From NCBI GenBank assembly GCA_964234715.1, contig OZ174280.1: a stretch of 64,000 bases of DNA; one strand, written 5' to 3'. A model generated the notes under the pieces. The model had not been told where the DNA came from. It saw only the letters and a program-made list of their open reading frames with translations, and made no database searches. This document shows, one piece after another, positions 1,697 through 52,541 of the stretch (position 1 is its first letter; each line of letters opens with the position of its first letter). The DNA comes from Podarcis melisellensis. Taxonomy: Eukaryota. The translations under genes and the position numbers were made by a program.

Positions 1697-2085
1697 GGGA
1701 TGCGGGTGGCGCTTTGGTCTAGACCACTGAGCCTCTTGGGCTTGCCGATCAGAAGGTTGGTGATTAGAAACTGCACAATAGGGTGAGCTCCCATTGTTCT
1801 GTGCCAGCTCCTGATAACCTAGCTGTTCGAAAGCTTGCCAATGGAAGTAGATAAATAGGTACCTCTGTGGAGGGAAGGTAAATGGTGTTTCTGTGCGCTC
1901 TGGTTTCTGTCATGGTGTTCCGTTGCACCAGAAGTGGTTGAGTCATGCTGGCCACATGACCCGGAAAGCTGTCTGTGGACAAACGCCGGCTCTCTCGGCC
2001 TGAAAGCGAGATGAGCACCACAACCCCATAGTCTCCTTTGACTGGACTTAACCATCCAAGGGTCCTTTACCTTTTTTACTTTACC
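1697..2085 (+). mobile_element. Sauria SINE, older full-length copy
   Basis: tRNA-like head gggatgcgggtggcgc, body motifs agtagataaataggtacc and ggccacatgacccgg, ACCTTT-type tail. TSD taatacagggctt(t)ca at 1681-1696 and 2086-2100. Confidence 0.9.
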
Positions 2086-5000
2086 TAATACAGGGCTTCA
2101 CCAGCCAGGCTAGCCTGCTTCAGGTTTAGGTAAAAATTAGTCTGAGAAAGCATTCCCTTTTCAGATTCCCTGACCTGGTACCCTCCAGGTATCGTAGGCT
2201 AGAACTCCAGCCATCCACAACCACCATTGCCAATGGACAGGCATGATGAAAACTGTAGTACAAAATGCCTGTATGGTGCCAGTTTGGGGAACATTGCTTT
2301 AGAGACTGTGGCACACAGATCAAGCTGCTACCCCTTTTGTGTCTTCTCTTTTAATCACCCTTGGGAAGCACATGACACTCACACAACCCCAATTTGTTAA
2401 ATTTCTTCCCTCTGTCGCCTTCATGGCACCATTTGAGAAGCAAACATTTATATGCTGAGATATTTTGTTGAATCAGAACTTCCATTCATAAGAGATGGGG
2501 ACAGATATTTAGTGTTGCTTACCTGCACCCTAATTTGCTCCCATCTCAAGGTCCTATATCATTTTGGTTGACTCGTCCATAACAATGGGAATAAATTACA
2601 TGTCGCATGGATCCAAGTGGCATTCCTAGTTGTGCCTTTGAAAGTCAGACTTCAGCTTCTGCTATAGATACATTGTACAGATGGTTTTTTAATGTATAAA
2701 GCATTGTGCAGATGGTTTTGATGTATAATTCATGATTGCTCCTGAGTCTTCCCACTGCTAAGGGCACTCTATTGTTCATCCTTTCTTTTTTATGTTTTAG
2801 CTTATATGATTGTTATTGCCCCTCTGCCTTGCTTACAATCTTCTGTATTGCTCTACAAAAGTCATTTATTAAGACATGAGTTATGTCTACCAAAGTGCTG
2901 TGCTTTTCTATATCCCAGCTTGGCACGGCGACACATGTAATTTAGAAATGAGTGCTATGTAAGAAGCCCTTTTTACATATTGGATTTTAGAAGGAAGGCT
3001 GCAGCTTAGAAGGTATTAGCAGAGAGATTTATGATTGTGCAGTGCTATATTGTGGTGGAGATTTTAATTTGTGGAATAGGTCACTGAAGCTCAGAAAAGG
3101 CACCTGTAGCTATTTGTGTTAATTTAACAAAAGAATCCAGCAGGGTGTTAGTCCATAACTTAATTTCCTTGAGTATAATATTTAACCTGACATTACAGTT
3201 TGTGCCTGTATAGTGTAACCAGAAGCTGCTTCCATTCTGATTTTATGTAGTTTAAGTTCTGATCCCAGGACTGTGGAGAGCTGAAATTGACATCCTCTTA
3301 TATATATTGGCGTTCTTCCCATGCACAGAAGTCTGCAGGTTTCAGTTGATGCTGAATGCCACATGGATACTCCCATATAGTGATGGGAACAAGTCTAGCT
3401 GCCTTCTAGGCTCCCTTGCTCCCCACACCTCTCTTCCGGCAGGGCCATGCAGAAGAGTTTCACCTAAGTATTGTTCTTAATGACAGCTTGCCATGTCATT
3501 TGAACCCAATAAAGGGTGGGTAATCCTAAATATGTTTTTTTAAAAAACAAACAAACCCATGGTTTATGTAGTCAGCATTTCAACAAATGATACTTAAGAT
3601 TAACCACAGTTCAGGTTTAAAGGTAATACAGAGTTGTGGTTAATTAAAATAAGAAGCAAACCCTTCCAATCTCCTCTTTGTGGCTGCCTTAGAGGAGTAG
3701 AGGAATGGGAAAGCATGCAAGCTCAGGGAGAGGCTAGTCTCTTCCCCTGTCGTGGGAAACCATAGTTTATCATGATGCCCAAATACTGTCATTGTTTCTT
3801 AGCCACAATTTGAGGAGCTGATTTCAACCTAAACATCATAGCATCTTCTCTTCTATTTTCCATTGTGCTCTTCAAGCCTTAACTCGGAGCAACCTCTTAA
3901 GATCAAGATAGTTTGCATGGGAAAACAGGCGTTCCCATTGACTGTTCTGTTCACCTGGAGTATCAGATGCACAATGGAGCCTTTTTATTATGGCTGGTGT
4001 GATTTGGAGAAGTCTGTGTAAGCTGGTTGAGATTTTTAGATCATGCTTTCCTTGTTTTTAAATATAAAATCCTTTCACTCACCCCTTTCCTACTAGGACT
4101 GCAATGTCCCCTTGAGGCAGCAGCCTTTCTTTTGAACTTTCTGAAATGTGCCTGCTGCTGGAACTGTAGCAAGAGAGAAGTCACCATGAATAGTTCACTT
4201 AACTAGTATTCAGCAGATACAGTTCTCTCTCTGTTTAGCCAAAGGCTGCTTTGCATTTCCCTGAAACAGTTGTTTCATGTTATCTCTGTTCCTCCTCTGT
4301 AAAATGGCAATCGTCCTTACCATATTCTGTTTCTACCAAGCTGCTGTAAATACAAAAGCCTTTTACAGATCACATTGCTAAGCATTATAAAAATACTGAA
4401 ACAGGGAAGTACTTCACAGATAAACGGCAATGTGTTTTATTTATAAGACCCCTTTGTTTTAGAGCAAAAGCAGCTTCAGAACAGATTAGGCCACATCCCA
4501 ACATAGATTTAAGCACCTATTGATTTCAATAGAAAGTGCACCTTCTTTTGACTTGCTGCATTTCAGAGTCCCTCTGTTTTATTTGATGGTCCTAATGTAT
4601 TCATTCAAAATGGCACCCTGCCATTGCGTAATGGTTGGCTGCATGAATGCTACATAACAATCCAGGATGCTCTTTGCATAACCCTCTATGTAAAAGAGAG
4701 GAGACATGAAAATTACATTCATATAGTTCAATGGAAACAAGCTAGCCATTTCTCAGTGATGAATTAGAGGACCAGAAATAAACTGGAGGGCTAAGAACTC
4801 CACTTCCGACCAGTTAATTTCATGAGGCAGAAGACAAATAAGGCACAAATCTGCTGATGTTTCCAAAGTTTGTTGTTGTTGCCATGCTCTCAAGAGTGGG
4901 AGGGGTGCTAGTAAGTGCCGTACAAATAACACATTTATCCTGCTGCAGTTGCCAACTTTCTGAAGTGAATGTGAAAAGTGAAGATAACAGCAAAGTTGCA

Positions 5001-5639: not shown

Positions 5640-5723
5640 AATGGATGGGGTTCAAAGCCATCTCTACAATATGCAGCTAATGGGTGGGGTTCAAAGCCAT
5701 CTCTACAATATGCAGCTAATGGG
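5640..5723. repeat. 39-bp tandem duplication (about 2.2 units)
   Basis: aatgg(a/g)tggggttcaaagccatctctacaatatgcagct at 5640 and 5679. Confidence 0.95.
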
Positions 5724-33492: not shown

Positions 33493-33836
33493 AAGGTAAA
33501 GGTAAAGGGACCCCTGACCATTAGGTCCTGTCGCGGACGACTCTGGGGTTGCGGTGCTCATCTCGCTTTACTAGCTGAGTACAGCTTCCAGGTCATGTGG
33601 CCAGCATGACTAAGCCACTTCTGGCGAACCAGAGCAGCACACGGAAACGCCGTTTACCTTCCCGCCGGAGTGGTACCTGCTTATCTACTTGCACTTTGTG
33701 CTTTTGAACTGCTAGGTTGGCAGGAACAGGGACCGAGCAATGGGAGCTCACCCCATCATGTGGATTTGAACCACCAACCTTCTGATCAGCAAGCCCTAGG
33801 CTCTGTGGTTTAACCCACAGCGCCACTCGCATCCCT
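33493..33836 (-). mobile_element. Sauria SINE, full length
   Basis: (aaaggt)n tail at left, head ...cgccactcgcatccc at right. 13-bp TSD cactcctatagta at 33480-33492 and 33837-33849. Confidence 0.92.
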
Positions 33837-48744: not shown

Positions 48745-50297
48745 ACTTAGATTGTTTCCATAGTTGGACCAACGTTAAACAGTGCTATTAAAGCAGCACA
48801 CATCTCCACTAGATTCAGAGTATGCATCTCATACAAAGGCAATAGGAGTCCTATATCAGCTTGGTTCAGTGAATCTGCTGTCATTCTGGACTACTGCAAG
48901 AAACGCGAATGAGATGCTGGTAGAAGGGGATCCTATTATCTGTATTCTGCTTAACAGCCTTTTTTCAAGACGCTTTCATATACAATAGAAACACGCTTCA
49001 GTGACCCAGCCAGTTTACATGGGGTTTCACTCTGCATATAGAGCAATTGGATGGCAGTGTGACATGTATTCTCTGCCATGTGATTGAACTTGATGTGCTC
49101 CTGCCTTGCCTGAGTTGCTTGCAGGTCATCCTAGTCTGCAGTCCTTCTCCATAAGAAGGGGAAATGTGGTGTGATCCTGATGTCCTGGAAATGCCATTCA
49201 TCAAAGCATCCCAGATATATCTATATATCTTATTTAGGACAAGAGCTGTGCAAGCTAGCTAAAATTCAGATAAAACTACACCAAACTTTTAACTCAATTA
49301 CATATCATATCCTGTAGTGGCAATTCAAAACCTAGGCTAGCTAGATTTCTCCAATCTGGTGTCTTCCAGATTGTTTGTTATACAACTTTTACAATCCTTG
49401 ACTATTGGTCATGCATACTGAAGCTGATAGTGCTTATAATCCCAAACATCTTGAGAACCCAAGCCGGGAAAGGCTGATCTAGATCATAATTTTTTTGTCA
49501 GCTTCTTCCAGAGAAAGGGAAGGGAAAATATCCCAGAGTCCAGCCATAAGTTGTTGGTGATTTGCAGCGGAAGGTCTGGAAACTCATAGATGAATGCATT
49601 TCTATGGCCAGCAGCTTAATTGTAAACTAAGAAGCAGATTCTAACAATAGAAATATGCAAAAGTTTATACATTGGTATTTTCCACTGAGACTATTCTAGC
49701 CCCATAGATGTGGTTTCCATTCAAGGAAATTAAATCCAATTGTATTTTATTTAAAGTAGTATATAGCACCCTGAATGCTGTTACTAGGTATTGGAAAAAA
49801 ATGCACTTGTTTGTCAATATAAATTAGATTCCTCCTGTTTCTTCACATATTGAATTTTCACATAGTAGGAGGAAAGGGAATATCCTTTAGCATCACTTTC
49901 ATTGATCTGGGGACTGCATGTCTTTTCAGAGGCTCTGGAAATGTGTTGGCATCTCAAAGTAATGTTATGCTTGCATTTATTGCAAGCAATGGATGCTTCT
50001 TGATTCCAAAATGTATTGCCTCCTCTGGTACAAAATTTCTGTTTTATTCTTGCAGAAGAGAGAGCAAGGGAAATAATCTACTGAGAAATCAAGTGCAAGT
50101 ACTTGGCACTTTTCCATGTATAGGTTTTAGTAACTGTGTTTCTTTCTAAATAAGTTCAAAATCAAATCGCTAGCATTTATACTTACATAGAAGTACTGGG
50201 TTGTTGTTTTATGAAATGTGAAAGTCAGCAATACTCAGCAATGGCACTCAGCAAGGAAAGCTCTTATCATAAAGGCAGAGATTAAGAGTAAATCTCC

Positions 50298-50654
50298 GGA
50301 CGCGGGTGGCGCTGTGGGTAAAAGCCTCAGCGCCTAGGGCTTGCCGATCGAAAGGTCGGCGGTTTGAATCCCCGCGGCGGGGTGCGCTCCCGTTGCTCGG
50401 TCCCAGCGCCTGCCAACCTAGCAGTTCGAAAGCACCCTTGGGTGCAAGTAGATAAATAGGGACCGCTTTCTAGCGGGAAGGTAAACGGCGTTTCCGTGTG
50501 CAGCTCTGGCTCGCCAGAGCAGCGATGTCACACTGGCCACGTGACCCGGAAGTGTCTTCGGACAGCGCTGGCCCCTGGCCTCTTGAGTGAGATGGGCGCA
50601 CAACCCCAGAGTCTGGCAAGACTGGCCCGTACGGGCAGGGGTACCTTTACCTTT
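50298..50654 (+). mobile_element. Sauria SINE, young CpG-rich copy with 107-bp flanking duplication
   Basis: Head ggacgcgggtggcgctgtggg (A box), ggtttgaatcc (B box variant), tail acctttaccttt. Direct repeat at 50187-50293 and 50655-50761. Confidence 0.93.
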
Positions 50655-50770
50655 ATAGAAGTACTGGGTTGTTGTTTTATGAAATGTGAAAGTCAGCAAT
50701 ACTCAGCAATGGCACTCAGCAAGGAAAGCTCTTATCATAAAGGCAGAGATTAGGAGTAAATATATGGGAC

Positions 50771-50939
50771 CAATATTCTTATGCAAAGGGAATTAACATA
50801 TCTAATGAGACAAAGAAAGTAAAAGACCTGGGGAACATGCTACAGTACAATCTAGCCTTCTCTGCTTTCATTTGTCCCCCAGGTCTTTTACTTTCTTTGT
50901 TTTGTTAGATATGTTAATGCCCTTTGCATAAGAATATTG
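50771..50939. repeat. Inverted repeat, 67-bp arms with a 35-bp spacer
   Basis: 50771-50837 is the reverse complement of 50873-50939 with 5 mismatches by manual comparison. Confidence 0.92.
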
Positions 50940-52541
50940 CTGAGTATGGCTACAGGTGACTTCCTCTCCATGTAGTTGTTGCTGCTATGACAGCTTCAAG
51001 TTTGCCATTCATCTCTTTCTATTCTCCAGAAACAACAGGTAGCTGCTTTCTACTGAATCCATTAATCCATTGATAGTGGCATAGAGTGAACAACACCTTA
51101 GCCATTTTGCTAGATTAGAGCACAAATGCAAGTCTTCATACTCATGTTAATTTTCACCAACAGAAGCTTTGTACCAGAGGTTCCTGTAGCATATCAGTAA
51201 AAATGCAATGAAAAAACACTCAGCATCCAGCACAGTATATTTCAAATGCTTAGTGGGGGGGGGGAATGGGGGTAAAAACTTAGTGGTCCACCAAAACCCT
51301 CAGCAATTTTCAAGAGGTCCATGGGGTAGGGGAAGTTTGGAAACCACTCCTTTAGATACTTCCTGCGGTGGGTAATATATTCAATTATTGTTAGGAAATT
51401 CATGAAACATTTGCCCCTGATAATATTCAAAAGAATACTAGATTGAGAAGTTAACATGGTTCAAGCCCCTAAAGCCTACTTTTTATATAAGGGAACTGGA
51501 CTAGGTTGCAAAGAATGTCCTTTTAAATAGGCTAACCTAAATAAATAAATAAGAAACATATATTTAGCAGTGGTATGGCTGAAAATTGAAGAGGCTGGAG
51601 CGGCTGCCACACTTAAGTTTCTGTTGATAAAAAGTGACATTTAAAATTAAAATGAAGAAAATAATCCCTAAAGCAAGGCTTTGTGATGCTGGCCATTTGT
51701 GCCACCAGTTTGTATTAAGCACTGAAGGGAGGTAGAAAGACCTGTGGAGATTTGTTTTTCATTAAGGCATGAATTAACATTCAGGCAGCTGAGCTAAAAT
51801 AGGTTTGCATAAAAGTTGGTGTTCTCAATTATTTGGAGTTCCATTCTATACAGTGAAATTAGAATTTTGAGTTATCATTTGAAAGTCTTTTCTTCCCCTC
51901 CTCCCGCCCCACTTGCAAAGCAAGATTATAATGGTTACTGGGGATTTCGATTAGGTGGCATTCTTATATATTGCTCACCTTATCTCATCACCAATTCTTT
52001 TCAAGTGACAAACTGAATTAATGTCATACATTAAATGCAAGAAGCTATGTAGATTCACCACTATGGCTGAGATTTTTTTTCCCCACCCTGACAATAAATA
52101 AAGATATTCAAAAGCTGTATGCAGTACAGTTCCTTCTCAAGCATATATGCAGTATTATTAACACTAATCCAATGTGTGTACAAAATGTGCAAACTGACCT
52201 GAAATCAGCAACTGTGGCATTTGAGGAAGGTGGGGGGGGGGGCTTCTCACTAATTGCCTCGCACTACACAGCTTGAATTTTCAGGATTTCACATCACCTT
52301 TGTTATGCATGAGAAATCTAGTCTATCCTGGTTGCATAATATACAGAATTAATCAAGTCCATTTCACACACACATTTCCCCATAGATGGATTCCATGGTG
52401 GTGGGAGTCTCTTTCGTGTGATGCATTCACACACTGCGGGGAACTGTTTTAGCGTTGTGTGATTCCAAAATGTATAACAATTCCATGAGAAGACCAAGCT
52501 GCAACACAGAACTTCACCACACTAAAGCAGTTCACATTCTA

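Follow-up and report, generated by a model that had tools for sequence, protein, structure and literature searches.

A young Sauria-type SINE between 107-bp direct copies of its target: a probable retrotransposition with a 106- to 107-bp stagger

Where the second DNA strand is broken is the least understood step in the integration of LINEs and SINEs. The window analysed here (the whole stretch of 64,000 nucleotides, in which all positions are given) raises this question at one locus: it carries a Sauria-type SINE between two direct copies of a 107-bp sequence, and we ask whether these copies are a target-site duplication (TSD) left by a single integration whose two cuts lay about 10 times farther apart than is normal. 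Long duplications may occur with Rte-1 of C. elegans. The presumed partner of Sauria SINEs is the Bov-B LINE, of the RTE clade (PMC13295347). TSDs of RTE-clade LINEs are reported to measure 7 to 15 bp, with 10 to 12 bp the commonest lengths, and for RTE-related SINEs of animals most lengths given do not exceed 13 bp (PMC6007223). Both published surveys of Sauria and Bov-B elements look only for 10 to 49 perfectly matched bases (PMC13295347, PMC6007223), so they would miss a repeat of 107 bp that contains one mismatch. The sequence-only reading stated that RTE-clade elements can make long TSDs; the literature that we searched yielded no report of a long (>100 bp) duplication for Sauria SINEs, Bov-B, or RTE-clade elements. 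Our reading, to which we assign a probability of roughly 0.85, is that a Sauria SINE was inserted here by target-primed reverse transcription (TPRT), presumably via the Bov-B enzyme, with a stagger of 106 to 107 bp.

The two copies differ at a single position, offset 99 of the 107-mer, where the left copy has A and the right copy has G, and their identity ends at both edges (Table 1). Between them lie four bases, ctcc, and then a 357-nt SINE; the edges of the repeat fall at the two ends of a complete retroelement, whose tail adjoins the downstream copy, and the window contains no N or gap at this locus. The sequence-only reading had reported 107-bp direct copies with one A/G mismatch, as well as four extra bases between the left copy and the SINE head; alignment within the window confirms both, and ctcc is not found in the other two SINEs of the window. 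We detected no further occurrence of the 107-mer anywhere in the 64 kb, and the pair is the only dispersed repeat of such kind there: the longest exact direct repeat within 1 kb is 98 nt at this locus, versus at most 17 nt in 20 shuffles of the window. Elsewhere, an exact 39-bp unit stands in tandem at 5646-5723; apart from it and the 107-mer pair, the window has no exact direct repeat of at least 30 nt within 3 kb.

Table 1. Features of the filled locus and its immediate surroundings (window positions; a dot marks features given without strand)
Feature	Position	Strand	Remarks
TTT stretch, "Tn" part of the Tn-TA first-nick signature	50176-50178	+	9-10 nt upstream of the duplication start
Left copy of the 107-bp target-site duplication	50187-50293	.	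Carries the derived A at 50285
Filler ctcc at the 5' junction	50294-50297	+	Seen neither in the two older SINEs nor in the empty allele
Full-length young Sauria-type tRNA-derived SINE	50298-50654	+	Full-length alignment to two older window copies
Pol III box A-like motif (TGGCGCTGTGG)	50307-50317	+	3 window matches versus ~3.6 expected; alone no rarer than chance
Pol III box B-like motif (GGTTTGAATCC)	50361-50371	+	Sole window match; 20 of 100 shuffles also matched
(ACCTTT)2 microsatellite-like 3' tail	50643-50654	+	ACCTTTACCTTT; hallmark of Sauria SINEs
Right copy of the 107-bp duplication	50655-50761	.	Ancestral G at 50753; right edge T/A (50761/50762) marks the second-strand nick
Palindrome, 67-nt arms (93% complementary), 35-nt loop	50771-50939	.	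9 bp beyond the second nick; context, outside the insertion

The box B-like motif of the SINE starts 43 nt after the box A-like motif, and neither is significant on its own. ARAGORN called no tRNA, which is expected for a degenerate tRNA-derived head. The 3' tail agrees with that of the Podarcis muralis family, (ACCTTT)1-2 (PMC13295347 Table 4). Within the window, the focal sequence matches only three SINE copies, the others being those at 33498-33834 (minus strand) and 1698-2034 (plus strand), to which it aligns over its full length at about 75%; no Bov-B 3' end was matched there, and a 3' region in common with the Bov-B LINE is described for Sauria SINEs in the literature (PMC13295347). All three copies share the opening GGA(T/C)GCGGGTGGCGCTGTGG and the ending CCTTTACCTTT; ctcc is not common to them. 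TSDs of 13 to 16 bp had been claimed for the two older copies, and this was close: the plus-strand copy has direct repeats of about 16 nt if one indel is allowed, and the repeats of the copy at 33498-33834 come to 10 to 13 nt.

The focal copy is young, being still CpG-rich and nearly identical to the bulk of its family. It contains 30 CpG dinucleotides, with an observed/expected ratio of 0.87, as against 0.48 to 0.55 in the older copies and 0.19 in the whole window. Some 2,500 to 3,400 short contigs in each of the sequencing runs described below match it at ≥99%, and 50438 is the only SINE position at which it differs from the majority of the family contigs aligned to it. An Rfam scan of 49500-51500 returned nothing on the SINE or the 107-mer. 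Pfam families above the cut-off were absent from the 7 ORFs scanned (of 12 that are ≥90 amino acids long at 40 to 60 kb), and the locus thus looks non-coding.

An empty allele with a single 107-bp copy, which the sequence-only reading had named as the check on a TSD, was found in two samples. We aligned contigs of four public sequencing runs (X1, X2, X3, and X19), built as de Bruijn contigs with k = 31, to positions 49400-51600. X1 bears the same coded organism label as the best-matching runs and comes from a different study; X3 is another organism, related and about 2.6% diverged (36 substitutions in about 1,368 nt). A 1,828-nt contig of X1, with 9 substitutions in 1,458 nt (~0.6%) relative to the window, runs from 49400-50186 (record positions 373-1159) straight into 50655-51325 (record positions 1160-1828) with no extra letter. 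A 1,364-nt contig of X3 is contiguous likewise, covering 49490-50186 (record positions 666-1364) and 50655-51325 (record positions 1-665). Both contigs represent the empty site, that is, flank, single 107-mer, and flank, with no SINE and no ctcc, and relative to it the filled allele is 468 bp longer; because a de Bruijn graph of the filled allele also contains the empty path, a contig could in principle traverse a filled locus in this way.

Since X1 and X3 both carry the empty allele, the insertion is supported as recent and, going by the run labels, polymorphic. A recent and possibly polymorphic insertion was what had been surmised from the sequence, and the empty allele of X1, under the same species label, together with the CpG richness of the SINE, bears this out. 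The X1 contig also gives the direction of the single difference between the copies. All three differences in its right-hand piece lie at 51001, 51263, and 51264, so its one copy of the 107-mer has G at offset 99; G in the empty allele makes the A at 50285 the derived base, which arose either after the insertion or during fill-in synthesis.

The X19 contigs show 0 differences from the window over 1,449 nt. X19 is probably the source sample of the window, and for that reason it does not count as independent support for the filled structure. Its contigs, made by the same pipeline, do not traverse the locus: one breaks off at 50245, and the following one opens at 50723, exactly where the earliest 31-mer to include the mismatch base 50753 begins. 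A restart at that point means that the A and G continuations are both present in the reads of this sample. The end at 50245 lies ~29 nt beyond the break that a simple filled graph would give (about 50216), which suggests an extra heterozygous variant in the X19 animal near 50246/50714, at about offset 60 of the 107-mer. When contig depth is summed over 50214-50287, X19 reaches ~2.6 times the value of its flanks, and X1 and X3 reach 0.7 to 0.9 times; depth of this sort cannot be read as copy number, and the raised value in X19 lends slight weight to the filled structure. All read evidence here comes from the k = 31 contigs, and none of them spans the left copy, the SINE, and the right copy, or any SINE junction, because the SINE, with thousands of copies, is too repetitive.

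The contigs of X2, from related organism B, break off at offset 57 of the 107-mer and resume at its offset 30, giving a 28-nt overlap (50216-50243/50684-50711). This pattern fits neither a plain empty allele nor the same filled allele, and may reflect a heterozygous insertion or a 28-bp duplication, perhaps a separate variant at the same place. Farther downstream, at 51250-51323, contig depth is ~100-fold above the flanks in all four runs, and the contigs of every run break there; this stretch is apparently a ~70-bp element of moderate copy number.

A Tn-TA signature of the first nick has been reported for Sauria SINEs, whose TSDs start with T and then A (PMC13295347). The context of the tail junction, GCATTTATACTTACA/TAGAAG, has a TTT ~10 nt upstream of a TA (50188-50189), and it matches Tn-TA only in the +1 register, in which the A at 50655 is assigned to the SINE tail: the strict repeat starts with A rather than the canonical T, and the canonical register makes the duplication 106 rather than 107 bp. 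The duplications of the two older window SINEs also start with TA. At the far side, the right repeat edge GTAAAT/ATATGG is a T/A step (50761/50762). With TA steps accounting for 8% of the sequence around, and with eight others inside the 107-mer left unused for the second nick, the step at the far edge argues only faintly for the element's endonuclease as the source of the second cut. Second-strand cleavage 107 bp from the first nick, as had been proposed from the sequence, is supported by the single-copy empty allele, with a stagger of 106 to 107 bp.

Four things were observed: how the locus is built, that an empty allele exists, that the copy is young, and that its first-nick context agrees with the published signature. 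The enzyme, the sequence of steps, and the cause of the second break we infer as follows. The RNA of a Sauria-family SINE would have been inserted via TPRT, presumably by the enzyme of a Bov-B (RTE-clade) LINE. The bottom strand would have been nicked at the left edge of the 107-mer, in the typical TTT-N9-TA context, and cDNA synthesis would have been primed from its 3' end, with the (ACCUUU)n tail as template. A break in the top strand would have come 106 to 107 bp rightward, at the T/A step, and not at the usual 10 to 15 bp; this break could have come from the element endonuclease at a distant TA, from a host nick, or from a structure-related break. Four untemplated bases (ctcc) would have been added at the cDNA end, and fill-in of the two 107-nt single-stranded 3' overhangs would then have duplicated the 107-bp target.

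Three other histories could in principle yield the same picture. The filled structure might be an assembly artefact, the source having been heterozygous for an ordinary SINE insertion and pieces of its two haplotypes having been joined so as to double 107 bp falsely. That contigs fail to span the whole structure would be consistent with this, as would the extra X19 break at 50245, which hints at heterozygosity in the segment, and the single A/G difference, which could be a heterozygous SNP. However, neither SINE end offers an alternative, short duplication: the tail runs straight into the start of the 107-mer, and the head is preceded by the last bases of the 107-mer and then by ctcc, a sequence absent from both flanks. 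Moreover, the left-copy depth of X19 departs from the onefold value expected of such an artefact and from that of the empty samples, its contigs break where the A/G mismatch predicts, and the window is uninterrupted here. We consider such a misjoin highly improbable.

An event at the DNA level would have to be either a template switch, for example at a palindrome, that copied a SINE from another place and recopied the 107 bp, or an insertion followed by a separate local duplication. The latter, a two-step history, needs two events with identical breakpoints. As for the former, the strongly folding palindrome just downstream of the insertion could stall forks, and four junction bases of unexplained origin are also typical of template-switch repair, but the insert is exactly one complete SINE, from its head to its (ACCTTT)2 tail, which is natural for retrotransposition and not for template switching. 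With both duplication edges at the SINE ends and the published endonuclease signature at the tail junction, we give an origin of this type very little credence. The empty allele of X1 could instead be secondary, if the insertion was once fixed and later lost by recombination between the 107-bp copies; this has been proposed for L1 insertions with long TSDs (PMC5223499), and a crossover anywhere in offsets 1 to 98 would leave the G seen in X1. Such a loss has only a slim chance of being correct, given that X3, another species, is empty too, that the SINE (by its CpG ratio and its one difference from the family majority) is too young to predate a species split of ~2.5%, and that two events are needed where a presence/absence polymorphism needs one.

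If the locus does record one TPRT event with a long stagger, the neighbouring palindrome (Table 1) is a candidate for having placed the second break. Its folding energy as single-stranded DNA is −60.5 kcal/mol (z = −12.9), and no second copy occurs in the window. The empty-allele contigs of X1 and X3 both contain it, so it predates the insertion. Rfam gave only sub-threshold miRNA-hairpin matches on it (the best, MIR8562, at 56 bits versus a gathering score of 211), and it shows no obvious terminal repeats or transposon-type duplication. Separately, a 16-nt stretch of the 107-mer (AGCAATACTCAGCAAT; 50695-50710, also 50227-50242) is the near-perfect reverse complement of 50936-50951, the bases directly after the right arm; to judge from the letters alone, the palindrome may formerly have extended ~60 bases farther on the left. 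Four-way junctions prompt the R2 protein to cut the second strand in vitro (PMC6895275), and a cruciform is a junction of this type. By this analogy the palindrome might have positioned the distant break, although from a single case we regard this as unlikely. Were it true, long Bov-B-driven SINE duplications would be a hidden class missed by 49-bp scans, and their far ends would cluster by DNA structures.

As a natural insertion with filled and empty alleles and a stagger of ~10 times the normal, the locus is a useful single case for a step that is otherwise poorly understood, and one of a sort to which the published surveys of Sauria and Bov-B TSDs are blind. It indicates that the presumed Bov-B/RTE machinery of lizards can also yield a duplication of >100 bp, and it supplies a 468-bp presence/absence marker for this lizard group. 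The focal insertion leaves the known mechanism unchanged: it is a rare outcome of that mechanism, in a LINE clade for which we found no such report.

Compared with the Sauria family (Piskurek et al. 2006; Sauria_POM of Podarcis muralis, PMC13295347), the focal element is alike in its tRNA-like head with A and B boxes, its size class (about 330 to 360 nt), its (ACCTTT)1-2 tail, its very high copy number, and the TTT ~10 nt upstream of TA; it differs in its duplication of 106 to 107 bp and in the four filler bases at its head. Its architecture is that of the long TSDs of human L1 in cultured cells (Gilbert 2002/2005 and Symer 2002, cited in PMC5223499), in which a complete TPRT product is likewise bounded by a duplication of at least 100 bases and which are explained by a distant second-strand break. 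Such L1 TSDs of >100 bp account for under 10% of events in HeLa cells and are frequent in excision-repair-deficient cells (PMC5223499). The L1 cases, however, belong to the L1 clade, have a poly(A) tail and a TTTT/A nick, and were experimental insertions, whereas the focal case arose naturally in the germline and concerns a non-autonomous SINE, whose partner is presumed to be Bov-B/RTE. The site-specific element R9, with its regular 126-bp stagger (cited in PMC6895275), shares with the focal SINE a distance of ~100 bp between first- and second-strand cleavage and the long TSD that results. A long, sequence-specific stagger is what R9 regularly makes, with a restriction-like endonuclease in an rDNA target; in the focal SINE, it is the exception in a family with a normal stagger of 10 to 15 bp.
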